From assembly GCA_002269645.1 (NCBI GenBank), contig NIVC01000278.1:186001-250000 (forward strand): a DNA stretch of 64,000 nucleotides. Reading direction: 5' to 3'. How positions within the stretch are numbered: the stretch's first letter is position 1; each line of letters opens with the position of its first letter. The DNA comes from Macrostomum lignano (taxonomy: Eukaryota). The notes under the pieces are model-generated. The model saw nothing but the letters and a program-made list of their open reading frames with translations, did not search any database and was not told the DNA's origin. The position numbers were made by a program, and so were the translations under genes. Below are positions 11,652 to 54,509 of this stretch, one piece after another.

Positions 11652-12948
11652 AACAGGAGACTCCCGTGTCTAACAGGAGACTCCCATGTCTAACAGGAGA
11701 CTCCCATGTCTAACAGAAGACTCCCATGTCTAACAGGAGACTCCCATGTCTAACAGGAGACTCCCATGTCTAACAGGAGACTCCCATGTCTAACAGGAGA
11801 CTCCCATGTCTAACAGAAGACTCCCATGTCTAACAGGAGACTCCCATGTCTAACAGGAGACTCCCATGTCTAACAGGAGACTCCCATGTCTAACAGGAGA
11901 CTCCCATGTCTAACAGGAGACTCCCATGTCTAACAGGAGACTCCCATGTCTAACAGGAGACTCCCATGTCTAACAGGAGACTCCCATGTGTTGTGTTCTA
12001 ATTAACACAGAGAGTTTCTTTGATTGAAGCTTTTGAGTTCAGAGATACACATCTCGCTCACAATATATTTATAGAGGTGAAACTCCTACTTGCACGTTGC
12101 ATTGCCAAATCGATACGCAATCACCTACTCATTCTAGTCTGAGTACAATATACGCCCACGCATTCAATAAGGTCAATAGTTAATTGTTAGTGGTCAGTTC
12201 ATTGCGCAAGCATTGTCAGTCACAACACCATGTCTAACAGGAGACTCCCATGTCTAACAGGAGACTCCCATGTCTAACAGGAGACTCCCATGTCTAACAG
12301 AAGACTCCCATGTCTAACAGGAGACTCCCATGTCTAACAGGAGACTCCCATGTCTAACAGGAGACTCCCATGTCTAACAGGAGACTCCCATGTCTAACAG
12401 AAGACTCCCATGTCTAACAGGAGACTCCCATGTCTAACAGGAGACTCCCATGTCTAACAGGAGACTCCCTTGTCTAACAGGAGACTCCCATGTCTAACAG
12501 GAGACTCCCATGTCTAACAGGAGACTCCCATGTCTAACAGGAGACTCCCATGTCTAACAGGAGACTCCCATGTCTAACAGGAGACTCCCATGTCTAACAG
12601 GAGACTCCCATGTCTAACAGGAGACTCCCATGTCTAACAGGAGACTCCCATGTCTAACAGGAGACTCCCATGTCTAACAGGACACCATGTCTACTAGGAG
12701 ACTCCCATGTCTAACAGGAGACTCCCATGTCTAACAGGAGACTCCCATGTCTAACAGGAGACTCCCATGTCTAACAGGAGACTCCCATGTCTAACAGGAG
12801 ACTCCCATGTCTAACAGGAGACTCCCATGTCTAACAGGAGACTCCCATGTCTAACAGGACACCATGTCTACTAGGAGACTCCCATGTCTAACAGGACACC
12901 ATGTCTAACAGGAGACTCCCATGTCTAACAGGACACCATGTCTAACAG
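11652..12948. repeat. 20-bp minisatellite (gagactcccatgtctaacag) interrupted by a solo LTR
   Basis: Direct reading; 17-bp variant units (caggacaccatgtcta) appear after 12670. Confidence 0.95.
11989..12227. mobile_element. Solo LTR, 239 bp
   Basis: Termini TGTTGTG...CACAACA (perfect 7-bp inverted repeat) with 5-bp TSD CCATG (11984-11988, 12228-12232). Confidence 0.9.
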
Positions 12949-13619
12949 CAAAAGTGTGCATTCAGTTTAAATCCATACTCTGCTATCTAGAGTAGTCTCA
13001 AAAGTGCTTTCCCACCAAATTCGGTCCAAATGAAAGCAAAAATGCGGTTTTATTCTCATTTTCCTGCTCAAAACAGCGGCCGAGGTGGCTGAGCAGCCCT
13101 CATGCCCCGCCATTGTCTCAGTTCAATGCAATGCGAAGCCACTGCAAACATTTATTTATGTAAATTTCACAGTGCACTGAGTGAGCACAGACTCAAGTGT
13201 CTGCCAGCATCATTGATGCAGCATCTGCTGTTCAAATGAGATGCACAGAATGGCTGATGCTCGTTCGAACTCACTTTTGTGCAGATGAAGCAACAAGCCG
13301 CACCACCCAGCCTCCAGGTGAGCACATTGCTCAGCTGTCCACAGACTCTCTCCGAGCTCGAGTCTCCCCCATCGCCATGGCAACTGGAGAAGCTCTGCAG
13401 CGTCTGTGCAGTTAAGGGCTCTGCACATCTCCTGCTCACTGCGTGAGGGGCCGAGCCGTGAGGCAGCCTCAGACCTCATGACACTCTGCAAGCCCTTTGA
13501 AAACAATGGCCAGCTTCACTGCATGCCTGCTTCATCAGCTCTGCCTTCCCCGCACTGTTGTGTGCATTGCACTGAGTGAGGCTCAGAAATGACGCTGCGA
13601 AATATTGATATATGAAATG

Positions 13620-14703
13620 GGACACAGCGGGTCACAGCAAGTCAGGACACAGCGGGTCACGGCAAGTCAGGACACAGCGGGTCACGGCCGGCAAGTCAGG
13701 ACACAGCGGGTCACGGTAAGTCAGGACACAGCGGGTCACGGCAAGTCAGGACACAGCGGGTCATTGTGGCAAGTCAGGACACAGCGGGTCACGGCAAGTC
13801 AGGACACAGCGGGTCACGGCAAGTCAGGACACAGCGGGTCACGGCAAGTCAGGACACAGCGGGTCACGGCAAGTCAGGACACAGCGGGTCACGGCAAGTC
13901 AGGACACAGCGGGTCATTGTGGCAAGTCAGGACACAGCGGGTCACGGCAAGTCAGGACACAGCGGGTCACGGCAAGTCAGGACACAGCGGGTCACGGCAA
14001 GTCAGGACACAGCGGGTCACGGCAAGTCAGGACACAGCGGGTCATTGTGGCAAGTCAGGACACAGCGGGTCACGGCAAGTCAGGACACAGCGGGTCACGG
14101 CAAGTCAGGACACAGCGGGTCACGGCAAGTCAGGACACAGCGGGTCACGGCAAGTCAGGACACAGTGGGTCACGGCAAGTCAGGACACAGTGGGTCACGG
14201 CAAGTCAGGACACAGCGGGTCACGGCAAGTCAGGACACAGCGGGTCACGGCAAGTCAGGACACAGCGGGTCACGGCAAGTCAGGACACAGCGGGTCACGG
14301 CAAGTCAGGACACAGCGGGTCACGGCAAGTCAGGACACAGCGGGTCACGGCAAGTCAGGACACAGCGGGTCACGGCAAGTCAGGACACAGCGGGTCACGG
14401 CAAGTCAGGACACAGCGGGTCACGGCAAGTCAGGACACAGCGGGTCACGGCAAGTCAGGACACAGCGGGTCACGGCAAGTCAGGACACAGCGGGTCACGG
14501 CAAGTCAGGACACAGCGGGTCACGGCAAGTCAGGACACAGCGGGTCACGGCAAGTCAGGACACAGCGGGTCACGGCAAGTCAGGACACAGCGGGTCACGG
14601 CAAGTCAGGACACAGCGGGTCACGGCAGGTCAGGACACAGCGGGTCACGGCAAGTCAGGACACAGTGGGTCACGGCAAGTCAGTACACAGCGGGTCACGG
14701 CAA
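13620..14703. repeat. 25-bp minisatellite (ggcaagtcaggacacagcgggtcac), ~43 copies
   Basis: Direct reading; gives the GHGKSGHSGSRQVRTQRVTASQDTA pseudo-ORFs. Confidence 0.95.
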
Positions 14704-15356
14704 GCCAAGCGGTGGCTGTATATTTAACTGAGAACTCTTGAGTAAGCACTGGACTTCCTGCTCCAACAGTTGCTAATAAAAAGTCAGTCCAAAAATCAAA
14801 TACAAAACTCAGTTCCGGAAAAAGCGCCAAACCGGTGGCAGAAAAATGTGAAAAATTCTCGGCAACAGAAAATCTGGAGTAGGCATTGAGCAGTCTGAGC
14901 AGATTGGGGAAATTGTGATTAGCTTTTTGCCAGAGTTTCAAAATCAACATTGATCAGCTTGAATCTGACATAGCACTCGAGTGAGCACAAAAATGTCTCA
15001 GTAATTGAAAGGAGCAACCGGTAAAACAAACCCGGCAGTCAAATAAATAAAAGTTGAATTCCGAATCGCAGACGAATAAACAAAACTGTGATTGGATAAT
15101 TGATCCGGGCATCGGGAAGCAGCAGGGTGATCGATAGACAAAACGATAACTCAAAATTCAAAATCAGTGGACATAATGAATTAATGAATAGATATAATAC
15201 AAAATTCAAAATTCAAAATCTAAATGAGCAGAATGAGCAGTTCGAACAAACAAAGCAGCCGGATAAGCAAAAATGGCAATCGGATAAACAAAGAGGGCTA
15301 AAGAACCTCCCGCTCCAAGAGCCGCTTCGCCCCTTCACAGCCCAGCGCTCTCGCAG

Positions 15357-18300
15357 TCACGATGAGGCACTCAGGAAGCTGTGCCGCAGCAGCTCCGCGG
15401 TGTCCGCTCGCTTCCTCGGGTCATAGTCTACGCACCTGAGGTAGAAGTCCTTCAGGCCGGCTGAGAACCCGTCCGCAATCCGAGGCATCGCCCGCCCTCC
15501 GCACCTCAGCACGGCGATCCTGAACTGCTGAACGTTCGCGTCAGGAGGCTGCATGGCCGTCAGCTCATACACGGTGCAGCCGAAGGCCCACACGTCGGTC
15601 TTGGCTGAGTACGGAATCGAACCGCCCTCGCCCATGAACAGCTCGGGCGCCATGAAGTAGGGGGTGCCTTTGGGATCGACGCCTGTGCTCAGGCCGCAGG
15701 TGCCGACGATCTCCTTGGCGAGGCCAAAGTCGATCAGCTTGATGACGCCTTTGCTGGTGAGCATCGCATTGGAGCTCTTGATGTCACGGTGCAAGATGGC
15801 GCCCTCCGGCTGGCAGTGCAGGAAGTTCAGGCCTGAGCAGATCTGCAGGTGGAGCAGTTTTGAGTAGTCATGAGACCCCATACCTGCTCCCACCCACACT
15901 GATCCCACACTGAACCCACAATGATCCCACACTGATCCCACACTGATCCCACACTGATCCCACACTGAACCCACAACTGATCCCACACTGATCCCACACT
16001 GATCCCACACTGATCCCACACTGATCCCACACTGATTCCACACTGATCCCACACTGATCCCACACTGATCCCACACTGATCCCACACTGATCCCACACTG
16101 ATCCACCCATGCCAGGCAATGCCAGAGAACTCAGAGACGCACCTGTCTGGAGAAGTCCCTGACCCCGGACTCCTTGAACGGCTTGTTCTGACGCTGCATC
16201 AGCTCAAAGAGGCTGTGACCCGAGACCAGCTCGGTGAAGATGTACAGCCCATCCGACTTCTGCTCGCACTTGAGGAACTGCAGAATGTTGGGATGCGAGA
16301 GTCGCTTGAGGATCTCAACTCCCCGCTTCTCCATCTCGACGGCTTTCTGCAGCTTCCCCGATTGGCCGGTGCCGCTCAGGGGCAGCACCTTGACAGCCAC
16401 CGTCTGGTTGAGGTCTGTTAGGGCCTTGTACACCTCACCGAATCCGCCACGGCCGATGAGCTGCTTCTTTTCGTCCTGCAGGATGAAGTCCCAGTCGGTG
16501 AAGCTGGGGTCCAGCTGCTTCTTGGCGCTGAATCATGAAATGTAGGAATTCGATGAATTTTGAGTTGCTTGGGGCTTTCTGAGCACTTTGGAGTCACTCA
16601 GCCTTCTGCGTCACCACCCTTCTGCGTCACCGCACTTCTCCGTCACCACCCCTCTGCGTCACCACCCTTCTATGTCACCACCCTTCTGCGTCACCACCCT
16701 TCTGCGTCACCTGTGGCGCTATATATGGCGCGATCGGGAGATTGCGGGCCACGAAGAGATTGGAGGCTCTCAAATCATTCAAGTGCCAATATTTTGAACA
16801 TCACACCAAATACATTCCTAATAAAATCGGAGAGTTTGAAACTTCGGAGACTTTGATGGCACTTGAACTCGCTGATGCTTTGATGCAAATTGAGCTATGG
16901 GTGGGGGTTGGGGCCCATTAGGAGACTGGGGGCGCCATGGGGAGCTTCACTGTCAGATTCATGACGCCCTCGCTTGACTGCGGCGCTGCTGAGAATTTCA
17001 GGGCGCCGATCATCAAAGCGCAATGAAATTTCGCCAAACAATATTTTCAGTATTTTCAGTGTCAAGCAGCAGTTCTCAGTCAGGACTCACCCAGCTGAGG
17101 CGGCAGTCGGCGCTGAGCTGCCAGCGGGAGGCCGAGAGGCTTCGAGCCGCCGCTGCGTGGAGGAAATCCAGGCCCGCTTTGCTGACTCGTCTGCGTCCCG
17201 CCACTGACTCTCAACAACATCAGCCGGTGTTTCGCCATCCTTGTTCTTCAAGCTGAACATTTCGGCTCCGATTTGGTCAAAAATGAACTGAAGAGAGTCG
17301 ACTGGCTGCCACTGAGCGGCCAAATGGACGGCCGTGTAACCGTATTTGTCAGGAACTGTGAGACAGTCGCTGCCGAGCTCCTTCACCAGCCACTTCAGAT
17401 TTGAATTGTCAGACTTCTTAGCAGCAAAGTGAAATGTTCTTCTATCACCATCTCCCTTCAGCCGAAAGCAGTCAGTTCCAATCTGTCTCTTGATCCACTC
17501 CAGCGACTCGATGCCCTGATGCTGAGCGGCCAAATGGACGGCCGTGTCACCGGATCTATCAGGAACTGTGAGACAGTCGCTGCCGAGCTCCTTCACCAGC
17601 CACTTCAGCATTGAATTATCAGACTTCTGAGCAGCAAAGTGAAATGCTGTTCTATCCAAAAATCCCTTCAGCCGAAAGCAGTCAGTTCCGATCTGTCTCT
17701 TGATCCACTCCAGCGACTCGATGCCCTGATGCTGAGCGGCCAAATGGACGGCCGTGGTATCGTATTTGTCAGGAACTGCGAGACAGTCGCTGCCGAGCTC
17801 CTTCACCAGCCACTTCAGCATTGAATTTTCAGACTTCTGAGCAGCAAAGTGAAATGCTGTTCTATCCAAAAATCCCTTCAGCCGAAAGCAGTCAGTTCCG
17901 ATCTGTCTCTTGATCCACTCCAGCGACTCGATGCCCTGATGCTCAGCGGCCAAATGGACGGCCGTGTCACCTCTAGAGTTAGGAACTGTGAGACAGTCAC
18001 TGCCGAGCTCCTTCACCAGCCACTTAAGCATTGAATTGTCAGACTTCTCAGCAGCAAAGTGAAATGCTGTTCTATCCCTAAATCCCTTCAGCCGAAAGCA
18101 GTCAGTTCCGATCTGTCTCTTGATCCACTCCAGCGACTCGATTCCCTGATGCTGAGCGGCCAAATGGACGGCCATGTCACCGTATTTGTCAGGAACTGTG
18201 AGACAGTCGCTGCCGAGCTCCTTCACCAGCCACTTCAGACAAGAGTTGCTTTTTCTGTTCATAGCGGCAAAGTGAGCGACTGCCCTTCTCCATCCACTGA

Positions 18301-18649
18301 CAATTCTCAAGCAGCCTTTGCTTCCCTTCTCTTCAACCAGCTCCATCCAAGATTCGTCCTGATGCTGGGCAGCCAAATGCACTGGAGTCTGCCCTCTACC
18401 ATTTCCATGTGTCAGACAGTCGCGTCCGAATCTGTCAATCAGCAGCTCCAGGCACGACGTACTCACAGGCTTGCAGGCCACGTGATGGGCCAGCGGCATG
18501 CAAAGCTCTTCAAAGGGAAAGTTTTGCTTGTCGAAGCCGCCCACCTCCAGCCAGATGTTGCTGCCGACCTCACCGCACAGTCGCTGCAGCTCCTCGCTGT
18601 CTCCAGCCTCCAGCGCCGCTCTCAGCTTCCGCTTTATCTGCGTTGCCAT
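15357..18649 (-). CDS. Ankyrin-repeat + STE/MAP3K-like Ser/Thr kinase, 3 exons (18649-17091, 16527-16143, 15842-15357), ~809 aa
   Basis: Exon 1 has ~11-12 ankyrin repeats ([18 protein letters not shown]). Exons 2-3 have [30 protein letters not shown] and DVWAFGC. Splice joins gg|gtgagt..ttcag|c (phase 2) and cag|gtgcgt..ctgcag|atc (phase 0) keep the frame. Confidence 0.9.
15893..16104. repeat. 11-bp minisatellite (gatcccacact) in kinase intron 2
   Basis: Direct reading. Confidence 0.95.
16601..16711. repeat. 16-bp degenerate tandem repeat (cttctgcgtcaccacc) in kinase intron 1
   Basis: About 7 copies. Confidence 0.85.
17321..18240 (-). repeat. Coding 210-bp tandem repeat (70 aa, two ankyrin repeats), ~4.4 units
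   Basis: caaatggacggcc recurs at 17321, 17531, 17741, 17951 and 18161. Confidence 0.95.
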
Positions 18650-19254
18650 GGCTGCACTGCTTCTCCTAGCAGCGCTTCTCTGCCGATCTGCTGTCTGCCG
18701 CAGCTGTTCCACACGGCTTCAAACTGAGTGCTTTGCTCTTCTTCAAGCGAATTTGCTTGCCAGCTCAGCAGCAGCAGCAAAAGTGCCGCTGTCACGGACT
18801 GAAATCTCTGAGCTCTCCCTGTGCAGAGAAATTTGTTTAAATGGACTGAGGCCGATTCTCTTCTCTGACCCAGCGGCTGTGTTTGAGGCCTGATTGGGTG
18901 CCAGGGGGCCCGGCAGCTGCTCTGCTCAGCGGGGTGAGAGATGCAGGAGCAGTGAGATGCTGCGAGCTCTGCTGAGTTAAACAATGAGAGCTGACTGTGG
19001 CTGCGTGCTCGGCATAGCAAGTGCATTGTCAGTGGGCAGGGGTGGGGCAGCTGAGAAACGAGGGGAGAGAGATGGAGAGGGGAGGGAGGGCAGAGCTGAG
19101 GCCTGGAAATCAAGCGGAGCTCTCTGACGATTTTCAATTCAGTTTGCAATTGTATGGCAAATATTTTGCAGAAAAATGCTTATAACTGAGGATTTTCTGT
19201 TGATGAACTCGAAACAGATGGAGAATGGTCGGTTGGGCTTGCCAGCGACACTTT

Positions 19255-19445
19255 ACATCAGTATCTAACAGGTGACATCAGTATCTAACAGGTGACATCA
19301 GTATCTAACAGGTGACACCGGTATCTAACAGGTGACATCAGTATCTAACAGGTGACATCAGTATCTAACAGGTGACATCAGTATCTAACAGGTGACACTA
19401 GTATCTAACAGGTGACATCAGTATCTAACAGGTGACATTGGTATC
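19255..19445. repeat. 20-bp minisatellite (gtatctaacaggtgacatca), left part
   Basis: Direct reading; continues at 22868-23293. Confidence 0.95.
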
Positions 19446-22400
19446 TGTTGTGAATTGAACTCCGGCTGAAGTATTTAACTCATGAGCTTAAGATTCCTTA
19501 TATTTCTTATTTGAGAGAGATCAGAAGGTGAGCTCTAGGAACTTTGGGCTGGGTTAATTACCATAGAAGAAACTGTAGCGATAGAATGCTTAGAGGCGAT
19601 TAGTGCAAACAAACGGCATAGAATAACGAACTTAAACTTATATAAACTATAGTGCATCTCAGTGTGCGATACACCACATGCCCCTCCCTATATTCAGAAG
19701 ATGTCAATTGGAACAGTGAAGTCGTTTCATGTCGTTTCATTAGTTTCGCGTTTTTTTTCAACCCTCCTCGGATACCAGTTTAAGGCACAAAGCGCTCATG
19801 AGCGGATCGGTTTCTGAGGCTCCTTCTCAGCTGAACGGCTTCTTCAGGCACGGGTGTCTGAATCCCTGCGACTGGCTCGTTTCCGGTTTCTGGCACGCTG
19901 TTAGTCTCATCTTCGTCCTCCATCTCGAATTCCGATGGCCGGGTGGCCATTGGGGCAAGTTGATTCGTGCTTGCAAGGCGAAGCCCATCGTCAGCGAGGA
20001 TCCATGCCGTGTTTTGACCTGCCGTCATCACGAACTTTGCCGGGTTGCCGACTGAGGAGCTGCTTGGCGCATAGATCACGCTGTCACCCTGTTCGAAGTT
20101 GGTCACCACCGGGACTCTGAGTCGCCGTCCAAAAAGAATTTCGGCTGGGCAGCAGCCCCGCGAAGAGGCTGAGTTTCTGTGGTGCAGGAGGACCTTTTGC
20201 AAGAAGCGGCTTACTCCATGTGTGTAATTTTTTCAGACCAGGCCCTTAGTGCGGACTTGACGGTCTGAACGGCCCTTTCTGCGGCTCCATTCGCCTGCGG
20301 GTAATAGGTGGGTGACTCGAGCTTCTTGGCACCATTGGCGCGGAGCCACGATGTGAGCACTTCAGTGGTGAACTCTGGGGCGTTGTCCGAAACCACCAGC
20401 TCGGGGACGCCGAACCGTGTGAATACGGTACGCAGGCACTGAATGACTGAATCAGCTGTGCGATCGCGGCAAGGAAAGGCTTCTATCCAGCCGGAAAAGG
20501 AATCCACGATGACCAGGATGTTTCCAGCGCCTTTTACGTATGCCCAGTCCATGTGTACGCGCTGGAACGGATACGTTGATGGAGGCCAGCGATCCCTGTC
20601 GTGGCCGAGTTGAGGCCGAAGCCTGCAGCAGTCTGGACAGCGTCGAACAAACTGGGCAACGTCCTGTTGCATTCCGGGCCACCAGCAGCTAGTAGACATT
20701 AGACTGTGCGCTGCATGCATGCCCGTGTGCGTGTCGTGAATGGCATCGAACGCGGCCTTGCGCAGTCTTGGTGGAATGAAGACTCTTCTTTGCATGTAGA
20801 GTAGTCCATTTTCTAGCGTTAGTTTGTTTGAGACTTTTTTGAACTGCGCTTCTGCCTGGCTGCAGTTTCGCCAATCGCCTTGGCGGACGCGATTGAGAAT
20901 TCTCTGGGTGAGCGCGTCTAACTCCATCTCCGCTGTGATTCGTTTAGCGTCGATCACAGGTGATTCAAATGCGATTGAATTAATCGTCTCGAATGTGGCC
21001 TTGTCGTCTGATGAGCTGTCATCGAATCTGAGTCTGGATAAGGCATCTACGTGTGGAATGCTACTGCCACATGCATACTGAATTCGGTAATCAAACTGCA
21101 TCAGGTACAAGGCCCAGCGTCCAATTCGGGCTGAGGCATCCACTGGGACGCCGGATCCGGAGCCAAAAAGTCGGATGAGCGGTTGATGGTCTGTGCGTAT
21201 TGTGAATGGTCGGCCATGGAAGTAGTGCTTCAAGCGTGCGATGGCCCAAACAATAGCCAAGGCCTCCCGCTCGATGTTAGAATAATTGGATTCAGCGGAG
21301 GACAGGCTACGTGACACGTATATCACGGGATGGCCATCTTGTGTTGCCACGGCGGCGAGGGCTCCTTTGGAAGCATCAGTGGTCAGCGTCAGTTCCTTTG
21401 TCAAGCTGTAGGGCTGGACCACAGGCGCTGAAGCGATTTCCAGCTTTAGGCTCTCGAACGCTTTGGAACACTCCCCCGACCACACGAACGGAACGCTTGC
21501 TTGTCGTAGTCTATTAAGCGGTGCAGTTTTGCCTGCAAAGTTTGGGATGAGGCGGCCGAAGAAGTTTACCAAGCCAAGAAAGTGAGCGAGCTCTGATTTA
21601 TTTGCTGGCGGGCACACATGGCGAATTTTCTCCACTAGGCGATCATCGGGCTGAATACCAGCCGCGGATATTCGGAAGCCCAAGAACGAAACCGAATCGC
21701 AATAGCTGATGCTTTTCGCTTCGTTGATAGTCACGCGCTTCTCAGATAGACGCGTTCGCACAGCAGCGAGGCGCTTCTCCAGCGTGGGTTTGTCTGGCGC
21801 GTGAATGAGAATGTCGTCTTGGTAGATAAGCAGTCCTTTGATGTCTCCTAGAATGGATTCCATGGTGCGTTGGAAGATGAAGGAGGCGTTCTTCATCCCC
21901 ATTTGCAGCCGATTGACACGATAGAGCCCGCGGGACGTGTTTATTACCGATAGGTCTCTCGCGGCTTCATCAAGCTCGATCTGCCAGTACGCCGAACGTA
22001 GATCGACTGTGGCGAAAGTTTTGGCGTTCTTTAGCTTGGAGAACATGGTCTCGATGTGTGGAATGGGATATGAGTCTGATTTGATCTTCGAATTGACGTG
22101 CACGCTGTAGTCCGCGCACATGCGGAGAGTTCCATCCTTCTTCTTTACCCACACTACGGGCGAAGCGTAACTAACCGGACCCTCTGTTGGCTCGATGACA
22201 CCAAGTTGGTGGAGGCGATCCAGTTCTGCGCTGATTTGGCTTTCTAGGGCGAGTGGCACAGCACGAGCGCGGCAAAATTGTGGTTTAGCACCGTCCACCA
22301 GTTCCATTCGGGCCTTAACGCCTCGGATACAGGGCAGAGGTTCGACGGCAGTTTTTTCTGCTTGAACATCGCTGGCATGGAAGACACCGTCAGACTCGAG

Positions 22401-22867
22401 GAGGTCGCGGCCAAGCAACCCGTACGTCTTTTCCGAAGAGACTACAATCAGTTCCACTGGTTGAAGGCGTCCTCGTAGCTCCACAGTTGCAGTCACTTTG
22501 CCAAGCGATTTCATGACGTGCCCGTCGAAGGCCTCCAAGCGCCGATTGGAACGCATGAGTGGTGGCTTACCCAGCAGAGCCCACTGCGCACTGGAGAGCA
22601 CGGAGACTGATGCTCCCGTGTCGATCTGCATTTTGAAGGGCTTATCGTTGATGATGCGCACAGTCTCCATAGATACTTCAATCGAATTGAGCGCATCGAT
22701 GAGATGCAGTACGTCTGTTTTTTGTTGGGCGGAATCTGAATCCTCCTCACAAGTAGTCGTGTAGTGCATGGATCGAGACTTACAAACAGTACTGAAGTGG
22801 TTTTTCTTTCCACACTTGGAGCAGCTTTTTCCGAAAGCCGGGCATCTGCCTTCAGGGTGTGACTGAA
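19446..22867 (-). mobile_element. Ty3/Gypsy LTR retrotransposon, 5'-truncated: end of gag, pol, PPT and 3' LTR (19446-19678)
   Basis: CCHC knuckle CSKCGKKNHFSTVC, protease IDTGAS, RT IYQDDIL, RNase H (TDAS, EREALA, TDH), integrase HHCC and DDE. Purine tract tagggagggg just before TGTGGTG...CACAACA LTR. One frameshift near 20211 (integrase C-terminus continues in ORF 19780-20202). Confidence 0.95.
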
Positions 22868-23293
22868 GTGTGACATTATAGTATCTAACAGGTGACACTA
22901 GTATCTAACAGGTGACATCAGTATCTAACAGGTGACTTCGGTATCTAACAGGTGACATCAGTATCGAACTGGTGACATCAGTATCTAACAGGTGACACTA
23001 GTATCTAACAGGTGACATCAGTATCTAACAGGTGACTTCGGTATCTAACAGGTGACATCAGTATCGAACTGGGGACATCAGTATCTAACAGGCGACGCCA
23101 GTATCTAACAGTTGACATCAGTATCTAACAGGTGACATCAGTATCTAACAGGTGAAATCAGTATCTAGCAGGTGACATCAGTATCTAACAGGTGACATCA
23201 GTATCTAACAGGTGACATCGGTATCTAACAGGTGACATCGGTATCTAACAGGTGACACCAGTATCAAAGAGGTGACACAAGTACCTAACAGGT
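22868..23293. repeat. 20-bp minisatellite (gtatctaacaggtgacatca), right part
   Basis: Direct reading. Confidence 0.95.
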
Positions 23294-42713: not shown

Positions 42714-42794
42714 GTTGATTTACCATCAGGTAACTAATTTGTAGCCGTACCAGTAACTAAAAAAAAATCTATTCAAGTTTCAATGCATTATTGC

Positions 42795-45700
42795 ATGGAT
42801 CCGCAGCAGACGCAAGAGGACTCGCCAGAAGAAGGCGTTTCTGCTTCTGCAGCAGCAGCAGCAGCAACAACAGCAGAAGCAGAAGCAGCCGAGACCAGCG
42901 TTGGGAAACCAACTGAGCTGCCAACAGCTGCAGAATCAGTTGATGAAGCTGCTTCTGCTGCCCAGACTCCGACAGAAACTGCAACAAATGCAAACAAAGA
43001 AGAAGACCGGCAAACTGAAAGCGAACCGCGAGCGGAAGAAGTACAGCAGCAGCAGCTACAACTAGAAGAAGAAATAGAAGAAGACAGTTCAAAAGAGCCG
43101 CAACCATCTCCTTCGCCGCCTTCTCCGCCGCCTCCGCCGCCTCCTCCAGCAGCTCAAGAGCGGCCATCTGAGGTCAGCCCCGGTGGCGGCAGCTTCCAAC
43201 ATCGCCTCACAGATCCTTGGTCTCCACTGCCAGATGAAGCCAGCAGCGCTCCAGCAGCCTCAGCTGCCCGACTCTCCCGTCGGGAGCGTTACGAAGACAG
43301 CGAAGCAGCTGCTGCCGCCGAAGTCGACGAAGAGATGTCCGGTTATAGTGGCCGGAGATCTCCGAGTCCGGCCGAACGGGCCATCCGCTTGGAGGCGGCC
43401 AAAAACAGCATCTACGCGATGCTCGGCCGGCCCGCCTCGGCCTCACCGTCGCCACCCCCGCCGCCAGCTGCCGCAGCTGCGGATCTGCCAGAATTCGACT
43501 ACGAATCATTGCGACGCGACTTGGACGAGATTCAAAGCCGACTGGCCGAGCGGCGCTTTCTCAATGGCGGCGGCGGCAGCGGAGGCAGCGGCAGCTCGCC
43601 AGTCAGGCTGAAATGGGACTACGGGGCGGATATTGGAGCGGATGGAGATGGCGGAAATGGAGGCGGAGGCGGTGGGAGCGCCGTAGCTGACGAGTCAACT
43701 CGGCAGCGTTACTACGAGACGCATCATCAATCTGAGCCTCCAGCTGCCCAGCCTCCTCAACATCAACAGCAGCAGCAGCATCATTCGCAGCCTCAGCTTC
43801 ATCATAGAGGCTATTACCGAGGCGACGAGGCGACATTTCTGAGCAGCCCGGATCCCGAAGATCCTGAAAATGCTCGCTATTATCGGCCCCAGGCCCGGCG
43901 GCAGTACCAGCTTCATCAGTCTGGTGGCGCTACTCAGGGCACCGCCCAGTATCAGCGTCTGCTAGATGAGGCGGAGGCTGCAGATCGCGGCTTGCGTCAG
44001 CGACTAAATGGCAGTGGCAGAGTTCAGCGCTCAGCCACCGCTCCTGAGGGATTCTACTATTATGATGAGAACAATGATGAAGCTGGAGACCGCCGGCAGG
44101 AGGAGGCTGAGCCTGCAGTACCTGAAGATGATGATGATGAAGAAGAAGAGACCCGAGAGTCGACTCACCCAGGCTCAAATGATGCCGTGCCGCCCAGGTT
44201 TCCTCGCGAAGCTTTCGGCTCGTCTCGGGTTGGCCGCAATGGGGGAGGAGGCGGCGGCGGAGCTACGGAGGATGACGTCACTTCCTTGGACGACACTCCG
44301 CGGGCGGCGGCTACTGCTGGCGGCTCGTCTGCTGATGCCCAGCTGCAGCAGGTGAGTCAGATGTGGGAGCTCAGTTGCAAGAATCGCTATAGAGTCATTG
44401 CGAACAGCTGCTCACTGGTGACTCTGGGGGGGGGACTCTTGTGACTTTTTTAACGACTCAAAAGCCTAGTGGTCAGAGCGTCGGACTCACGACTTGAAGG
44501 TCGGGGGTTCGATTCTTGACTCACTCGGAACAATTTGTGTCCTTGAGCAAGAGACTCAAACTCTGCATTGCTTCAGTTCACCCAGCTGTAAAATGGGTGC
44601 CAGCATTAGCTGGGGTAATTGAGGCTGTGTGTGGCGACCCCCTCTCCAAGTCCTTCGTACTCAGCCTTCAGATGCGCCGCGCAATAGCTGCGGCTGAGCT
44701 GTCGGTTGCACATCTGGCCATTAGGGCAGGTGTAATAAATTATTATTATTAATTGATAACGACTCAAACAACTGTAATGAGCCTGTTTGAGTCGCGAGTG
44801 CTTCTAAAGTCATTATAGAAGCGTCAAACTGACCCAGGCGACTCTTTAGCGACTTGTACCGCGACATCTCGTCGTTCCTAGAGTCGTCTAGAGTCATTGA
44901 GACGCCTCTTGGCCTGGTTGCCACCATAGAAAGTCAGGACCGCTGTACATCCTGTGTGAGCTGACTGCAGTAACTTCCTCACTCTCCATCTCAAACATCT
45001 CGCGCCCGCAGGCCTGGGAGAAATTCCAGCGAGCCAGACGACCCCGCGGCCTTCGCCAGCTGCTGGCGGACCCGCTGCCAGCCGTTCTCGGCCGGGTCGA
45101 CCCGACCTCGCTGACTTCCAACTCCTCATCGGCCGATCGTCGCCAGCCTCGCCGAGACGACTTGAACAAGGACGACGAGATCGAAATTGACGATGTGGAT
45201 GTCGATGATGCCGATTTCGACGCGCCGACATCGGACGTGAGCGACCTGGACGCGCAGACGCTCCGTTTGCAGGCGCTGCTGCTTCGCCAGAAGGAGAAGC
45301 TGATGGAGGCGCGCGCGGCGGAGCGGAGGCGCCGGGAGCGGATTCGAATTCTACAGCGCCTGCTGTGTGAGCGCGGCTCCGGTTCCGGCTCCGGTTCGGG
45401 TGTCGGCGACGGCAGCGTCGTTCGACGTCGCGTCGGTGCAGCTCCGAAGCCGATTCTCGCCGGCGGCGGTCAGCAGCAGCAGCAGCCGCGCAAAACCGTC
45501 ACGATAACAACCCGAGGCCGGCATGACTTCAACTCCAATGCTGACCCGACAACAATCAGCGCCTCGGCGGCAGCGGAGGACAGCGAAGATCTGGAAGACG
45601 ACGACGACGAGTCCTGCGGCACGGTGACTCCGCTGCCGACAGATCGGACCGATGCTACTCAGACTCTGGACGAGCCCACTCTGCCGCACAGCATGAGCAG

Positions 45701-46457
45701 CGTAGGCCGGCGAAGGCAGCAACAGCCTCAGCCGCCGCCGCCGCCGCACCATGAGCGGCCGGACGAGATCGATCAGATTTTTCTCCGAGCCAATCGGTCG
45801 GCCAAAATCGCTCCCCGAGGCCTGGCCTGGTTCCTGCCTGTTGAGCGGCAGAAAGCGACATCACAATCGACTCCGACTCCGCCTGAGCCTCAAGAATCCC
45901 GACGGAGGATTATTGAACTGGAAGATGAGGAGCGTCCAGATGAGCAGCAGGAGGAGCAGTCAACCAGCCAACCGACCAAACAACTGCAGGACGCCTTCAA
46001 CCAGCGAATGTCGGATTTTGTTAGTCGAAGCCGGGCCAGACAGCGGCGAGTCCGGCTGGCTGCCGAGGAGCGACAGGTGGTGGCGGACCTGGAACGCGAT
46101 CGGCTCCAGCTGTTCGCCTCTCCAAGGCTGGCCGCTGCCCCGGCCGCTGAACAGCAGCGACCGACTTCGGCGAAGCTGCCCCCGACCAAGACCTGGGCAT
46201 ATCGGCTCAAGGTGCGGTCGCCAACCAGGAATTCTGCCGCTCCTGCTGGGCAGCAGCAGCGGAAACAGCAGAAGCGCAAGCCTGTGCTGATTGTCAATGG
46301 CGGCGGCGTGAAACGCTGGCCAGAGACAGTTGCGCGCGAGGAGGCCGAACGTCGGGCAGCTCGACTGAGGAATAACAGGCTGAGACAGCAGGTGTACGGC
46401 GAGAGGCTGCTCAGGAATGTGCTCAAACGGAATGGCGGCTGGAGGGCTATTGACTGA
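42795..46457 (+). CDS. ALMS1: ALMS-motif centrosomal/basal-body protein, ALMS1-like, 2 coding exons (42795-44351, 45012-46457), ~1000 aa
   Basis: C-terminal LQDAFNQRMSDFVSRSRARQRR...WPETVAREEAERRAARLRNNRLRQQVYGERLL fits the ALMS motif, and the upstream GLAWFLPV recalls the SWFVPV motif of ALMS1. Join cag|gtgagt..ccgcag|gcc is phase 0. CEP295 and FATS share the motif, so orthology is tentative. Confidence 0.7.
44463..44750 (+). mobile_element. tRNA-derived SINE with CORE-like central domain and (tta)n tail
   Basis: A box agcctagtgg, B box ggttcgattc, core tgtgtccttgagcaaga..ctcagttcacccagctgtaaaatggg; related copies at 36358, 55398 and 60341. Confidence 0.88.
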
Positions 46458-48391: not shown

Positions 48392-49285
48392 GACAGGATT
48401 ATACTACTTTAGAACACCTGGAAAGCAGCTTGCAATTAATTATAATTGATTAAACTAATCTAATAAATTAGGAGACTGCATTAAAATATTATTCTGGTGT
48501 TGATGATGGTGTAGATCAGTTCGCATTCTGAGAGTCCGTTTTGAGCGAAGCTGCCATTTGCTCCAAGATGCTTCATTTTGTAAATTATAAGTATGCAGCT
48601 GTCAATGTGTCGGTTTCGCAGCTGGCATTTTCCATCGCCCCCCCCCTCAAAAAAATACAAACAAATTCCAGCTCTCCAGCAGCACTGCAGAAGCAATATT
48701 TCCTCTCCTCGCGTGCTTCCTCCCAAAAAATCGGCCTTAAATTTCCATATCTACTTGGGGACTGCTACTTCACCCCAGAAGAGACTCTTATTTCGTTTCC
48801 TCGCACAAGATGAGGCGAAACGCCAGATAAAAAAGGCTGAATGCTACACGCGACCGGTTCTGTTCTTCCGCAACAAAATGGCGGCCCCAATATTTCTAAC
48901 CCAAGCGAAAAAGGCAATGCAAGTTTGTTGCCTGCCATCCCCCCTCCCCAACCTATATTGCAAAGTCTTAAACATAACCTTTTGTCGAAGGGACTGCCTA
49001 CTTCAATAGCATCGGATATGAAGCGGTGGCATTGGTGACTGCGCGCTTCTGAATTGCGCTCACACACTTACGGCACCTGGGCCTATTCGTAATTGCACTT
49101 TCTGCGGCCCGCCCGCAAATCTCAGGATATCCGTCACACCTGCAGAGGCACCTGTGCCACCTTTCAGCCAGGAAGTCAGGCTCATAAAATTTTTCAATAT
49201 TTCGTGCTGAAGTTAGAGTTCAATAATAAAATAGGAGCCCGTAGAGGTTTATGACGGTCTCGCACTCTCATCGCCGACAGTTGCT

Positions 49286-52200
49286 CACTTGGGAACTGAC
49301 ACAGTCTCACTTGGGAACTGACACAGTCTCACTGGGGACTGACACAGTCTCACTTGGGACTGACACAGTCTCACTTGGGACTGACACAGTTTCACTTGGG
49401 ACTGACACAGTCTCACTCGGACTGACACAGTCTCACTTGGGACTGACACAGTTTCACTTGGGACTGACACAGTCTCACTTGGGAACTGACACAGTCTCAC
49501 TGGGACTGACACAGTCTCACTGGGGACTGACACAGTTTCACTTGGGACTGACACAGTCTCACTTGGGAACTGACACAGTCTCACTGGGGACTGACACAGT
49601 CTCACTTGGGACTGACACAGTCTCACTTGGGACTGACACAGTCTCACTTGGGACTGACACAGTCTCACTTGGAACTGACACAGTCTTATTGGGACTGACA
49701 CAGTCTCACTTGGGACTGACACAGTCTTATTGGGACTGACACAGTCTCACTTGGAACTGACACAGTCTTCTTGGGACTGACACAGTCTCACTTGGGACTG
49801 ACACAGTCTCACTTGGAACTGACACAGTCTTCTTGGGACTGACACAGTCTCACTTGGGACTGACACAGTCTCACTTGGGACTGACACAGTTTCACTTGGG
49901 ACTGACACAGTCTCACTTGGGACTGACACAGTCTCGATTGGGACTGACACAGTCTGACTTGGGACTGACACAGTCTGACTTGGGACTGACACAGTCTCTC
50001 TTGGGAATGACACAGTCTGACTTGGGACTGACACAGTCTCGCTTGGAAATGACACAGTCTGAATTAGAACTGACACAGTCTCGCTTGGGACTGACACAGT
50101 CTCACTTGGGACTGACACAGTCTCACTTGGGACTGACACAGTCTCACTGGGGACTGACACAGTTTCACTTGGGACTGACACAATCTCACTTGGGAACTGA
50201 CACAGTCTCACTGGGGACTGACACAGTCTCACTTGGGACTGACACAGTCTCACTTGGGACTGACACAGTCTCACTTGGGACTGACACAGTCTCACTTGGG
50301 ACTGACACAGTCTCACTTGGAACTGACACAGTCTTATAAGGATTCAATTTCATATGCATGTAGGCCTTAGGGACTATTTAGGGACTATCGTAGGAACTAT
50401 TAGGAATATGACTTAGGATTTAGGAAATTAGGGAATTGCATTGTTATCAGAGCGTGGTGGAGTGTAGCAGTTGTGGACAGCTGCACTCTTACAAAAAGCC
50501 ACAAGTGCTTGATGACGGCATTGCAAAGGGCGAGTGCAGGCCGCCGTAAAAGTCTGCTTCCACTTTAGAGGGGTTGTATGCCTTTATGTGGGGCGGGGTT
50601 CAATTACATTTTTTAACAGAGGCATTTCAGGAATCGCACGAGAAAGGGGAACCGTGAGAATCGGCCGGAATTGCGCGGTGGGTGGAAGACGTGGGAAATG
50701 ATAACGCAGACAGTTTCACAGGGACTTCATCGGGGAAATTTACTATAAATAAGCGAGGGGTTAAATGCTAAAAACTTTACCCTTTTCTCACTCTCTTTTC
50801 ACTCTCTTTTAAACGCCTTGTATTAACTTTTGGATTGCTTAATAGTTTGCAAATCACGACGACCGCTTCTGCAGACACCTGTGACCGGAGGGTAAGACTG
50901 AGCACTGACATGACTATAGATTTATGAATATTAGCGTATCGGTCTCAGACCAGGTAGATAGGCGTAATTTATATATATATATATAATAGATTAATAGGAG
51001 TATTTGAGTAGCTTAGTTATACCGTAGTGTCTCAGACTTGTTCTCCCTGCTTGTAGCTCGCTTATTTGCTTATTAATACAAACGTTGAAAATGCAGTAGT
51101 AAATATAATTATATGGTTGATCGGTAAATAACATCCAAGCATATTCTACCTCGTTTGAGTCACTATTAATCATATGTAAGGTTCTTAGTTTGCGGCCAAC
51201 TAGGAAGCTTATAAGTCTCACTTGGGACTGACACAGTCTCACTTGGGACTGACACAGTCTCATTTGGAACTGACACAGTCTCACTTGGAACTGACACATT
51301 TTCACTTGGGACTGACACAGTCTCACTTGGAACTGACACAGTCTTATTGGAACTGACACAGTCTCACTTGGAACTGACACAGTCTCACTTGGAACTGACA
51401 GTCTCACTTGGAACTGACACAATCTCACTTGGAACTGACACAGTCTCACTTGGGACTGACACAGTCTGACTTGGGACTGACACAGTCTCACTTGGGACTG
51501 ACACAGTCTCACTTGGGACTGACACAGTTTCACTTAAGACTGACACAGTCTCACTTGGGAATGACACAGTCTGACTTAGGACTGACACAGTCTGAATTAG
51601 AACTGACACAGTCTCACTTAAGACTGACACAGTCTCACTTGGGAATGACACAGTCTGACTTGGGACTGACACAGTCTCGCTTGGGACTGACACAGTCTGA
51701 CTTGGGACTGACACAGTCTCGCTTGGAATGACACAGTCTGACTTGGGACTGACACAGTCTCGCTTGGAACTGACACAGTCTGAATTAGAACTGACACAGT
51801 CTCGCTTGGGACTGACACAGTCTCGCTTGGGACTGACACAGTCTCGCTTGGAACTGACACAGTCTCGCTTGGAACTGACACAGTCTCACTTGGAACTGAC
51901 ACAGTCTCGACTGACACAGTCTCACTTGGAACTGACACAGTCTTCTTGGGACTGACACAGTCTCGCTTGGGACTGACGCAGTCTCACTTGGGAACTGACA
52001 CAGTCTCAAATTGGAACTGACACAGTCTCACTTGGGAACTGACACAGTCTCACTTGGGAACTGACACAGTCTCACTTGGAACTGACACAGTCTCACTTGG
52101 AACTGACACAGTCTCACTTGGAACTGACACAGTCTGACTTAGGACTGACACAGTCTGACTTGGGACTGACACAGTCTGAATTAGAACTGACACAGTCTCG

Positions 52201-54509
52201 CTTGGGACTGACACAGTCTCACTTGGGACTGACACAGTTTCACTTGGAACTGACACAGTCTTATTGGGACTGACACAGTCTCAATTGGGACTGACACAGT
52301 CTTACTTGGAACTGACACAGTCTCACTTGGAACTGACACAGTCTTCTTGGGACTGACACAGTCTCGCTTGGGACTGACACAGTCTCACTTGGGAACTGAC
52401 ACAGTCTCAAATTGGAACTGACACAGTCTCACTTGGGAACTGACACAGTCTCACTTGGGAACTGACACAGTCTCACTTGGAACTGACACAGTCTCACTTG
52501 GATTTGACACAGTCTCACTTGGAACTGACACAGTCTCACTTGGAACTGACACAGTCTGACTTGGGACTGACACAGTCTGAATTAGAACTGGCACAGTCTC
52601 ACTTGGGACTGACACAGTTTCACTTGGAACTGACACAGTCTCACTTGGAACTGACACAGTCTCACTTGGAACTGACACAGTCTCGCTTGGAACTGACACA
52701 GTCTTCTTGGGACTGACACAGTCTCACTTAAGACTGACACAGTCTCACTTGGGACTGACACAGTCTCGCTTGGAACTGACACAGTCTTATTGGGACTGAC
52801 ACAGTCTCACTTGGGACTGACACAGTCTCACTTAAGACTGACACAGTCTCGCTTGGGACTGTCACAGTCTCACTTGGAACTGACACAGTCTCAAATTGGA
52901 ACTGACACAGTCTCACTTGGAACTGACACAGTCTCACTGGGAACTGACACAGTCTCACTTGGAACTGACACAGTCTCACTTGGGAACTGACACAGTCTCA
53001 CTGGGAACTGACACAGTCTCACTTGGGAACTGACACAGTCTCACTGGGAACTGACACAGTCTCACTGGGAACTGACACAGTCTCAAATTGGAACTGACAC
53101 AGTCTCACTTGGAACTGACACAGTCTCAAATTGGAACTGACACAGTCTCACTTGGAACTGACACAGTCTCACTGGGAACTGACACAGTCTCACTTGGAAC
53201 TGACACAGTCTTACTTGGAACTGACACAGTCTCACTGGGAACTGACACAGTCTCACTTGGGAACTGACACAGTCTCACTGGAACTGACACAGTCTCAAAT
53301 TGGAACTGACACAGTCTCACTTGGAACTGACACAGTCTCACTGGGAACTGACACAGTCTCACTGGGAACTGACACAGTCTCACTGGGAACTGACACAGTC
53401 TCACTGGGAACTGACACAGTCTCAAATTGGAACTGACACAGTCTCAAATTGGAACTGACACAGTCTCACTTGGAACTGACACAGTTTCACTTGGAACTGG
53501 CAAAGTCTGGCTTGGAACTGACACAGTCTCACTGGGAACTGACACAGTCTCACTTGGAACTGACACAGTCTCACTTGGGAACTGACACAGTCTCACTGGG
53601 AACTGACACAGTCTCACTTGGGAACTGACACAGTCTCACTGGGAACTGACACAGTCTCACTGGGAACTGACACAGTCTCAAATTGGAACTGACACAGTCT
53701 CACTTGGAACTGACACAGTCTCAAATTGGAACTGACACAGTCTCACTTGGAACTGACACAGTCTCACTGGGAACTGACACAGTCTCACTTGGAACTGACA
53801 CAGTCTCACTTGGGAACTGACACAGTCTCACTGGGAACTGACACAGTCTCACTTGGGAACTGACACAGTCTCACTGGGAAATGACACAGTCTCAAATTGG
53901 AACTGACACAGTCTCACTTGGAACTGACACAGTCTCACTGGGAACTGACACAGTCTCACTGGGAACTGACACAGTCTCTTTGGGAACTGACACAGTCTCA
54001 CTGGGAACTGACACAGTCTCAAATTGGAACTGACACAGTCTCAAATTGGAACTGACACAGTCTCACTTGGAACTGACACAGTTTCACTTGGAACTGGCAA
54101 AGTCTGACTTGGAACTGACACAGTCTCACTTGGAACTGACACAGTTTCACTTGGAACTGGCAAAGTCTGACTTGGAACTGACACAGTCTCACTTGGAACT
54201 GACACAGTCTCACTTGGAACTGACACAGTCTCACTTGGAACTGACACAGTCTCACTGGGAACTGACACAGTCTCAAATTGGAACTGACACAGTCTCACTG
54301 GGAACTGACACAGTCTCAAATTGGAACTGACACAGTCTCACTTGGGAACTGACACAGTTTCACTGGGAACTGGCAAAGTCTGACTTGGAACTGACACAGT
54401 CTCACTGGGAACTGACACAGTCTCAAATTGGAACTGACACAGTCTCACTTGGGAACTGACACAGTCTCACTGGGAACTGGCAAAGTCTGACTTGGAACTG
54501 ACACAGTCT
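49286..54509. repeat. 21/22-bp satellite (ttgg(g)aactgacacagtctcac), ~4.3 kb of repeat, split by an insert at 50335-51213
   Basis: Direct reading. Confidence 0.97.
50335..51213. mobile_element. 879-bp solo-LTR-like insert with non-canonical TATAAG...CTTATA ends
   Basis: 5-bp direct repeat AGTCT (50330-50334, 51214-51218) from the satellite unit; 6-bp terminal inverted repeat; internal TATA box (ctataaataag, ~50743) followed by a CT-rich stretch; no convincing ORF. Confidence 0.6.

Follow-up and report, generated by a model that had tools for sequence, protein, structure and literature searches.

Introduction

In fungi, NOD-like receptors (NLRs) can carry repeats of high internal conservation (HIC), ankyrin (ANK) repeats among them, in which the selected sites lie on the concave face (Dyrka et al., 2014; PMC4986451). 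Some of these receptors use a protein kinase as their effector domain, and the same work found homogenised ANK, TPR, and WD repeats to be rare in animals, where they make up ~0.8% of repeats of these types (PMC4986451). Among metazoan domain repeats, concerted evolution is likewise described as rare and has been tied, speculatively, to host-parasite conflict (PMC5100051). Internally conserved arrays with hypervariable contact residues mark the fastest-diversifying fungal and bacterial NLR-like receptors, and in the literature searched we found no homogenised animal ANK, TPR, or WD repeats tied to such receptor logic. Here, we analyze a stretch of 64,000 nt from the flatworm Macrostomum lignano (contig NIVC01000278.1, positions 186,001-250,000; the whole stretch is called the window, and positions are counted within it) and describe a gene on its minus strand that is predicted to join an internally conserved ANK array directly to a protein kinase, and whose repeat units differ chiefly at the codons for putative ligand-contact positions.

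Other proteins share parts of this design. RNase L, the 2-5A sensor of vertebrates, consists of nine ANK repeats, a pseudokinase, and a KEN ribonuclease domain; it is single-copy, its repeats are not homogenised, its ligand is a nucleotide second messenger, and ligand-induced dimerisation activates it. ANK repeats and a kinase also occur in one cytosolic polypeptide in ILK and TNNI3K (N-terminal ANK repeats, then a TKL kinase) and in RIPK4/ANKK1 and DAPK1 (kinase, then ANK repeats), all of them conserved, single- or low-copy proteins with heterogeneous repeats and kinases of the TKL or CAMK type. Designed ankyrin repeat proteins (DARPins) are synthetic binders in which an identical scaffold is repeated and diversity is confined to a few positions of the repeat. 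The gene described here had been singled out in an original prediction, made from the nucleotide sequence, as a DARPin-like hypervariable ANK array fused to a MAP3K-like kinase and resembling fungal NLR/HET sensors. That description holds in part: the exceptions concern the class of kinase, the number of units, and the architecture of the presumed fungal counterparts, and the role proposed there in sensing non-self is putative.

Results

The coding region of the ANK-kinase gene (15357..18649, minus strand) has three exons and encodes 809 aa. Tandem Repeats Finder (TRF) reports a single array at 17312..18238, of period 210 with 4.4 copies and 92% matches, and this is the only long-period array in the window. 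The original prediction spoke of five near-identical 210-bp units; their near-identity is borne out, while the number is not, since the array holds four full units (18238-18029, 18028-17819, 17818-17609, and 17608-17399, all on the minus strand) and 29 codons from the start of a fifth (17398-17312), after which comes diverged sequence that forms a C-terminal capping repeat. Each unit encodes 70 aa, or two 35-aa ANK repeats, and the homogenised array amounts to eight ANK repeats and the start of a ninth. The four full units are 89.0-95.2% identical to one another in DNA and 84-91% in protein, and internal conservation at the HIC threshold (at least 85% over at least 100 aa) extends over 280 aa, with the most divergent pairs of units borderline and with a scaffold nucleotide divergence of ~2-3%. 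Non-synonymous variation falls at 15 codons of the full units (14, 17-22, 29, 53, 54, 57, 58, 64, 67, and 70), and silent variants occur at six (1, 10, 17, 32, 43, and 67), close to the figure of about five scattered silent changes given earlier. All of the variable motifs that had been read from the DNA are present in the translation: DKYGDM, NSRGDT, DKYDTT, DRSGDT, and DKYGYT in hairpin 1; FRDRTA, FLDRTA (twice), and DGDRRT in hairpin 2; and AAQH, AAEH, and AAQW together with AAEK, AAQK, and AAKK at the ends of helix 1.

These differences are concentrated at the positions by which ANK proteins are engineered to bind. As a surface set, fixed before variation in the family was examined, we used the positions randomised in DARPins (x33, x2, x3, x5, x13, and x14), which correspond to codons 16, 18, 19, 21, 29, and 30 and codons 51, 53, 54, 56, 64, and 65 of the unit (n=12). 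The register follows from HMMER alignments to NOMPC, ankyrin-1/2, and espin, in which GDTAVHLAA takes the place of the canonical GxTPLHLAA, and the DARPins E3_5, D12, and R12 in the PDB differ among themselves exactly at the positions of this set. In the window gene, variation affects 7 of the 12 surface codons but only 8 of the 58 others (Fisher p=0.0023). When the comparison is widened to 33 complete 210-bp units from nine genes (the window gene and eight close paralogs, L001-L008, recovered as genomic loci), the eight codons of highest entropy (53, 19, 54, 29, 18, 64, 21, and 56) all belong to the surface set (hypergeometric p=5e-8), and a protein alignment of 33 units from 13 proteins has the same pattern of sites. 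DSSP applied to an AlphaFold2 (AF2) model assigns codons 18, 19, 21, and 52-56 to loops preceding helix 1, codon 29 to the C-terminal end of helix 1, and codon 64 to the position right after it. The entropy ranking, the Fisher test, and the comparison with PDB DARPins agree with the earlier claim that the variable codons are the hairpin and helix-1 positions randomised in DARPins.

Pairwise Nei-Gojobori estimates by site class give the same division between surface and scaffold. For the window gene, surface dN is 0.353 and surface dS 0.103, scaffold dN is 0.034 and scaffold dS 0.075, and surface dN is 4.7 times scaffold dS; for all 33 units, the corresponding values are 0.428, 0.199, 0.043, and 0.076, with a ratio of 5.6. 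Among the single genes L001, L002, L003, and L006, surface dN is 0.42-0.48 and surface dS 0.07-0.41, scaffold dN is 0.021-0.041 and scaffold dS 0.020-0.051, and surface dN exceeds scaffold dS 9- to 21-fold. Within the surface class itself, dN/dS is 1.1-7.2, in keeping with the expectation that it would exceed 1 at the variable codons. The kinase exons of the nine genes, taken as a control, have a dN/dS of 0.41-0.44 and a dS of 0.02-0.31, with all open reading frames (ORFs) intact: the kinase is under purifying selection. Because the surface estimates stand above those of both scaffold and kinase, the contact-position codons outpace the synonymous sites of every part of the gene, the kinase remaining conserved, and the codon comparisons show diversifying selection restricted to the predicted canonical ligand-contact positions. 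Outside the homogenised array, the N-terminal ANK repeats (aa 1-137) differ between the window gene and L001-L008 mainly in their hairpins (for example, RTVDRWEQTV and RIANEDGKTV), and dN/dS between paralogs in this region is ~0.7-1.5.

The scaffold, by comparison, evolves in concert. Its nucleotide divergence is 0.022 within genes versus 0.042 between genes (permutation p<0.0005). The number of units is 2 in L004, L005, L007, and L008, 3 in L001 and L006, 4 in the window gene, 5 in L003, and 13 in L002, and every array of the nine genes lies in one open exon. Identical hairpin cassettes of 18-21 nt recur across genes on different contigs: DSRGDT is found in L001, L002 (four times), L003, and L006 (twice), and GDDDRTA in L001, L002, and L006. 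Hairpin-1 and hairpin-2 cassettes occur in different combinations, which requires recombination within units. The suggestion that units have been reshuffled or converted is supported by these recurring cassettes in new combinations and by the range of 2-13 units. Some annotated proteins carry fewer units than the genomic ORFs (P0003 has 4 where L002 has 13, P0004 has 4 where L003 has 5, and P0008 has 2 where L006 has 3), probably through collapse during transcript assembly, and published protein lengths for the ANK-kinase family are therefore unreliable.

A second copy of the gene (g2; locus L009) lies on contig NIVC01000085.1 and is collinear with the window gene (g1), at 98.7-99.3% identity through the gene and its flanks (window positions 12851-20591). 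The two proteins differ at T64S, D526N, and G577R. There are five differences in exon sequence outside the array, 14 in 797 bp of 5' flank, and none in intron 1. The pair could be a recent segmental or whole-genome duplication, or two uncollapsed haplotypes. The alignment to the g2 copy also extends into the region of a Ty3/gypsy element described below.

Exon 1 is a 1559-bp exon that contains the array within a 541-codon minus-strand ORF. It starts with the ATG at 18647-18649, and its first part (18239..18649; aa 1-137) encodes N-cap helices and two diverged ANK repeats, as judged from the translation and the AF2 helices, most of which have a predicted local distance difference test score (pLDDT) of 75-95 apart from one low block at about residues 40-50. 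Past the array, whose limits rest on TRF, the codon table, and dN/dS by site class, the end of exon 1 (17091..17311) encodes a C-terminal ANK repeat that is diverged and serves as a cap, followed by a helix and by a linker rich in Ser, Pro, and Ala that is modeled as disordered. Intron 1 (16528..17090, phase 2) holds a 16-bp minisatellite at 16593-16711. Exon 2 (16143..16527) begins with a family-specific juxta-kinase motif and continues into the kinase N-lobe with the alpha-C Glu; intron 2 (15843..16142, phase 0) is nearly filled by an 11-bp minisatellite at 15893-16104; and exon 3 (15357..15842) encodes the kinase C-lobe and ends in the stop codon TGA at 15357-15359. Both junctions are canonical, the first (donor GG|GTGAGT at 17091/17090, acceptor ttcag|C at 16528/16527) restoring the frame and the second (donor CAG|GTGCGT at 16143/16142, acceptor ctgcag|ATC at 15843/15842) being phase-matched. 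The spliced model matches the annotated M. lignano protein BOX15_Mlig013667g1 (PAA86484.1) residue for residue, with 0 differences.

Pfam places Ank hits at about residues 50-480 (Ank_2 6e-39, Ank_4 9e-39) and matches Pkinase to both downstream exons, and the AF2 model, built with a 17-sequence family alignment (mean pLDDT 85.8), has a regular paired-helix ANK solenoid at pLDDT >90. This combination of a hidden Markov model match and a paired-helix solenoid places the array in the Ank clan. The linker at residues 506-523 has a pLDDT <50, and the predicted order is solenoid, disordered linker, a conserved LDPxFxxWxF motif, and kinase, the juxta-kinase motif being retained in distant subfamilies. 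No signal peptide or transmembrane segment is predicted in the protein, in agreement with the intracellular location proposed for it. With Ank and Pkinase matches, in-frame splicing, and intact catalytic motifs, the fusion of array and kinase that the original prediction described stands, and sequence and model together indicate a real gene of an expressed family in which a predicted ANK solenoid of ~12 repeats is joined to an active-looking STE kinase. Other Pfam hits on the repeated unit at about residues 208-285 (Cmr2_N, ParB-CE, YutD-like, DUF1612, and Muramidase) were rejected as chance matches; two of them pass their gathering scores, and only through summed repeats, namely Cmr2_N with 33.5 bits against a cutoff of 25 and ParB-CE with 27.9 bits against a cutoff of 23.

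The catalytic motifs of the kinase are all intact (G-loop, VAIK Lys, HRD, DFG, and APE), and the activation segment reads GTPYFMAPE. Its best PDB sequence matches, at E ~1e-35 and ~30% identity, are STK25, SLK, MST3/4, and LOK of the STE20 kinases and ASK1/MAP3K5 and MAP3K2 of the STE11 kinases, with PAK also among the top matches, and Foldseek gives template modeling scores (TM) of 0.75-0.85 to SLK, LOK, ASK1, and MST4. On this evidence from alignment and model, the kinase is of the STE group. The label 'MAP3K-like' was too specific, as STE20 kinases (SLK, STK25, and MST) and ASK1/MAP3K5 score equally close; a MAP3K-like identity is possible but not established. ASK1/MAP3K5, MAP3K2, and SLK/LOK/STK25/MST have an activation segment of the GTPYFMAPE type, as the M. 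lignano kinase does, but no orthology of the latter to any one of these subfamilies is apparent, and only here is the kinase preceded by the LDPxFxxWxF motif. The best 60 PDB sequence matches listed include no TKL kinase of the ILK or TNNI3K type and are mostly STE-group kinases, plus NEK and PKR. The protein ends four residues past the kinase domain; neither Pfam nor the position of the protein end leaves a C-terminal KEN ribonuclease domain, and we found no NACHT or NB-ARC (NOD) domain by Pfam and no extra domain in the AF2 model.

The gene belongs to a large family expansion that we find only in the genus Macrostomum in the databases searched. In a word-indexed search, ~30 relatives from M. 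lignano came first, followed, from E=1e-33, by generic kinases. An exhaustive HMMER scan used the non-repetitive half of the protein (ANK cap, linker, and kinase) as query; of its hits above 40% identity covering all three parts, ten were looked up and all were from M. lignano bar one public-run transcript (P0132), and below these came multi-kinase proteins of a generic sort, from birds, oomycetes, and protists. The family corresponds to OrthoFinder group OG0000013 of Brand et al. (2020; PMC7336406, Additional file 4), whose 73 sequences (39 from M. lignano, 18 from M. spirale, 10 from M. hystrix, and 6 from M. pusillum) include Mlig013667.g1 and have a mean protein divergence of 1.05. With dozens of paralogs, the locus is not single-copy, a finding that would have counted against a recognition role had it been otherwise. 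We found no member of the family outside Macrostomum in the databases searched, no further copy within the window, and, in a look-up of the exact protein in run assemblies, the genome record only. Members of the family are loosely paired on the same contigs, 60-70 kb from each other (L001 and L009 on NIVC01000085.1; L002 and L003 on NIVC01000558.1), and a separate 385-aa ANK-only gene adjoins the L003 member (L003 31072-33050).

The distant subfamily of P0016 has its own homogenised array, of seven units, with variable hairpin-2 and helix-1 sites. An older branch (P0122, P0133, and P0132) has heterogeneous 33-aa ANK repeats with the same LDxxFxxW motif and kinase; since the repeats of this branch are of the ordinary heterogeneous kind, homogenisation is derived within the family. 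P0132, an intronless transcript contig, has ANK repeats and kinase in a single ORF. The older-branch proteins come from loci L010 and L011 and runs SRR28338164/3, and in P0122, an M. lignano protein of 1180 aa, the kinase domain is present twice in tandem.

The orthogroup annotation of Brand et al. (Table S5) assigns the family no testis, ovary, or tail-region class and no neoblast or germline class. Expression of OG0000013 is higher in regenerants than in adults in two species, and between worms kept in octets and isolated worms some members go up and some down. The group is not discussed in the text of the paper (PMC7336406), the family is absent from the supplements of the TIM29 paper, and searches of the literature by gene ID and by Macrostomum with ankyrin, immunity, or kinome returned no description of it, which accords with the statement in the original prediction that no such system was known from animals.

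Set against the systems outlined above, the M. lignano gene matches each in part. With the fungal NLR/STAND proteins (HET-E/D and the PNP_UDP-NACHT-ANK proteins of Podospora), it shares tandem repeats that are nearly identical, vary in number, and evolve in concert, positive selection confined to the ANK face formed by hairpin and inner helix, and a large lineage-specific repertoire. Fungal NLRs, however, have a central NACHT or NB-ARC domain, which the M. lignano protein lacks, its ANK array being N-terminal and directly linked to the kinase; moreover, what is homogenised in it is a 70-aa double repeat, its host is an animal, and its variation in repeat number is known among paralogs. The likeness to fungal NLR/HET proteins drawn in the original prediction thus holds for the evolutionary regime and fails for the architecture, and we rejected membership in the NLRs for want of a NOD domain. 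RNase L shares the N-terminal ANK sensor array ahead of a kinase fold and is the sole Foldseek hit to span both domains (~650 aligned columns), but the superposition is poor (root-mean-square deviation ~21 Å, TM 0.25-0.29), and the likeness is therefore architectural only and not homology; membership among RNase L or Ire1-type KEN proteins was rejected, as no KEN domain follows the kinase. ILK and TNNI3K have the same N-to-C order as the M. lignano protein, but membership among the TKL ANK-kinases was also rejected on the sequence matches given above. Like DARPins, the array repeats one scaffold and limits diversity to x2, x3, x5, and x13. It differs from them in being natural and germline-encoded, in hardly varying x14 and x33, in consisting of 35-aa repeats of two alternating types, and in the length variation of hairpin 2 (GGFWK and GGLLD).

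The rest of the window is rich in repeats: 36% of it is tandem repeat, nearly all of it minisatellites of period 10-36 bp, including ~247 copies of a 21-mer at 49284-54509. An intact-looking Ty3/gypsy pol ORF (protease, reverse transcriptase, RNase H, and integrase) occupies 20211-22898 on the minus strand, ~1.5 kb upstream of the start of the ANK-kinase gene, and is flanked on both sides by one 20-bp minisatellite (19255-19446 and 22880-23293, with the consensus in rotated phase); either the element inserted into the minisatellite or the repeats are part of its termini. On the plus strand, the ORF at 9557-10051 matches the universal stress protein domain Usp (E=5e-23), and that at 45162-46457 carries an ALMS motif (E=5e-11). 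A 553-aa ATG ORF at 42783-44444 has no Pfam match.

Discussion

The pattern described here may be that of a cytosolic 'recognition kinase', in which a diversified ANK surface would act as the ligand-operated switch of an STE kinase, a reading to which we give roughly even chances. Unequal crossing-over or gene conversion keeps the array uniform, alters the number of units, and shuffles hairpin cassettes between units and genes. At x2, x3, and x5 of the hairpin and at x13, where helix 1 ends, positive diversifying selection maintains differences from repeat to repeat. Since the hairpin and x13 positions differ, each paralog presents a distinct binding surface on a common scaffold. This variable face may bind a range of rapidly evolving protein ligands, of which pathogens, symbionts, or selfish elements would be the most plausible sources. 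Ligand binding would turn the kinase on, either because clustered molecules undergo trans-autophosphorylation, in the manner of RNase L or ASK1, or because an autoinhibition mediated by the ANK array is released. The kinase might then signal into a stress- or MAPK-type pathway, and the germline-encoded family, with at least 39 M. lignano sequences, would serve as the repertoire. In its fullest form, the proposal holds that Macrostomum encodes a set of intracellular receptors akin to 'natural DARPins', whose diversity arises by selection and is reshuffled by repeat recombination, and which sense proteins of pathogens or selfish elements and signal through an STE kinase of their own, without a NOD domain; this form is tentative, and we hold it to be doubtful.

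Several observations temper this reading. The sensor and immune roles and the non-self ligands are things that we only infer, and the variable sites are placed on the concave face from register, DSSP, and established ANK geometry rather than from coordinates. The AF2 model has a predicted template modeling score of 0.54 and is uninformative on contacts between the ANK array and the kinase. Pairwise dN/dS on recombining repeats is approximate, and multi-nucleotide differences, which make up 11 of the 31 codon-pair differences in the window gene, inflate per-codon distances. Surface dS is itself raised (about 0.06-0.41), so the signal reflects in part older variation retained in the face of homogenisation, and not new substitutions alone, though selection for diversity is implied under either reading. 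The arrays of g1 and g2 differ at 0 of 927 nt, so that nothing points to hypermutation or to diversification of a somatic type; array diversity is evolutionary and lies between paralogs, and is not ongoing hypermutation. Finally, the evidence from expression is at the level of the orthogroup only and is mixed.

The same arrays could instead serve targets within the worm, their variable ANK faces recruiting self substrates or scaffolds or tracking fast-evolving reproductive proteins in sexual or intra-genomic conflict, the worm being a hermaphrodite in which sexual conflict is strong. ANK repeats are generally known as generic protein-protein modules, and ILK, TNNI3K, and RIPK4 bind self partners. 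Some members of the orthogroup respond to social or mating condition (octets versus isolated worms), and reproduction-related genes evolve fast in Macrostomum (PMC7336406). Plain sub-functionalisation, however, does not predict an omega well above 1 at contact positions only together with homogenisation of the scaffold and shuffling of cassettes, and the orthogroup is without testis, ovary, tail-region, or germline annotation; we regard endogenous targets as unlikely. A special case of non-self sensing, in which the arrays act as sensors or restriction factors that recognize retroelement or endogenous-virus proteins, draws some support from the extreme repeat-richness of the genome, exemplified by the tandem repeats of the window, from the intact Ty3/gypsy pol ORF 1.5 kb upstream of the gene, and from the fact that arms races with transposable elements leave the same selective signature. 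The nearness of one retroelement is probably coincidence, though, and no enrichment is seen in the germline, where control of such elements matters most. The absence of gonad or germline enrichment weakens the explanations by sexual conflict and by transposable-element control alike, and the latter seems improbable to us.

A further alternative is that the diversity is not adaptive at all, and that a young tandem expansion with an unconstrained surface has undergone gene conversion that skips tracts with mismatched hairpin codons. The paralogs are indeed young by kinase dS, M. lignano is rich in recent duplicates (g1 and g2 are 99.3% identical), and a raised surface dS is expected if conversion skips divergent codons. 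Neutral sites, however, cannot exceed the synonymous rate, and surface dN (about 0.33-0.48) is 2-4 times kinase dS and 4.7-21 times scaffold dS; the same positions are hypervariable in the independent subfamily of P0016, and the constraint on the kinase and the intact ORFs speak against this account as well, leaving it only a slim chance. An artefact of assembly or annotation, with repeats mis-assembled or with the ANK and kinase exons belonging to separate genes, might be suspected from the annotated paralogs that have fewer units than their genomic ORFs (P0003 and L002 above). It is made very improbable by the recurrence of the same architecture in open frames at at least nine loci on different contigs, by the identical arrays of g1 and g2, by the canonical, phase-matched junctions, and by transcript P0132, which joins ANK repeats and kinase in one ORF.

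The evolutionary regime of the array is the one already known from the HIC repeats of fungal NLRs (PMC4986451). What is new here is the bilaterian host, the direct fusion of an ANK array to an STE kinase without a NOD domain, and the homogenised module of a 70-aa double repeat. Even if the ligands are endogenous, the family is a natural experiment in the diversification of DARPin-style binders. Flatworm immunity is poorly understood and M. lignano is an established laboratory model; if the proposal is true, the family would be a previously undescribed type of animal innate immune receptor, convergent with the HIC-NLRs of fungi.

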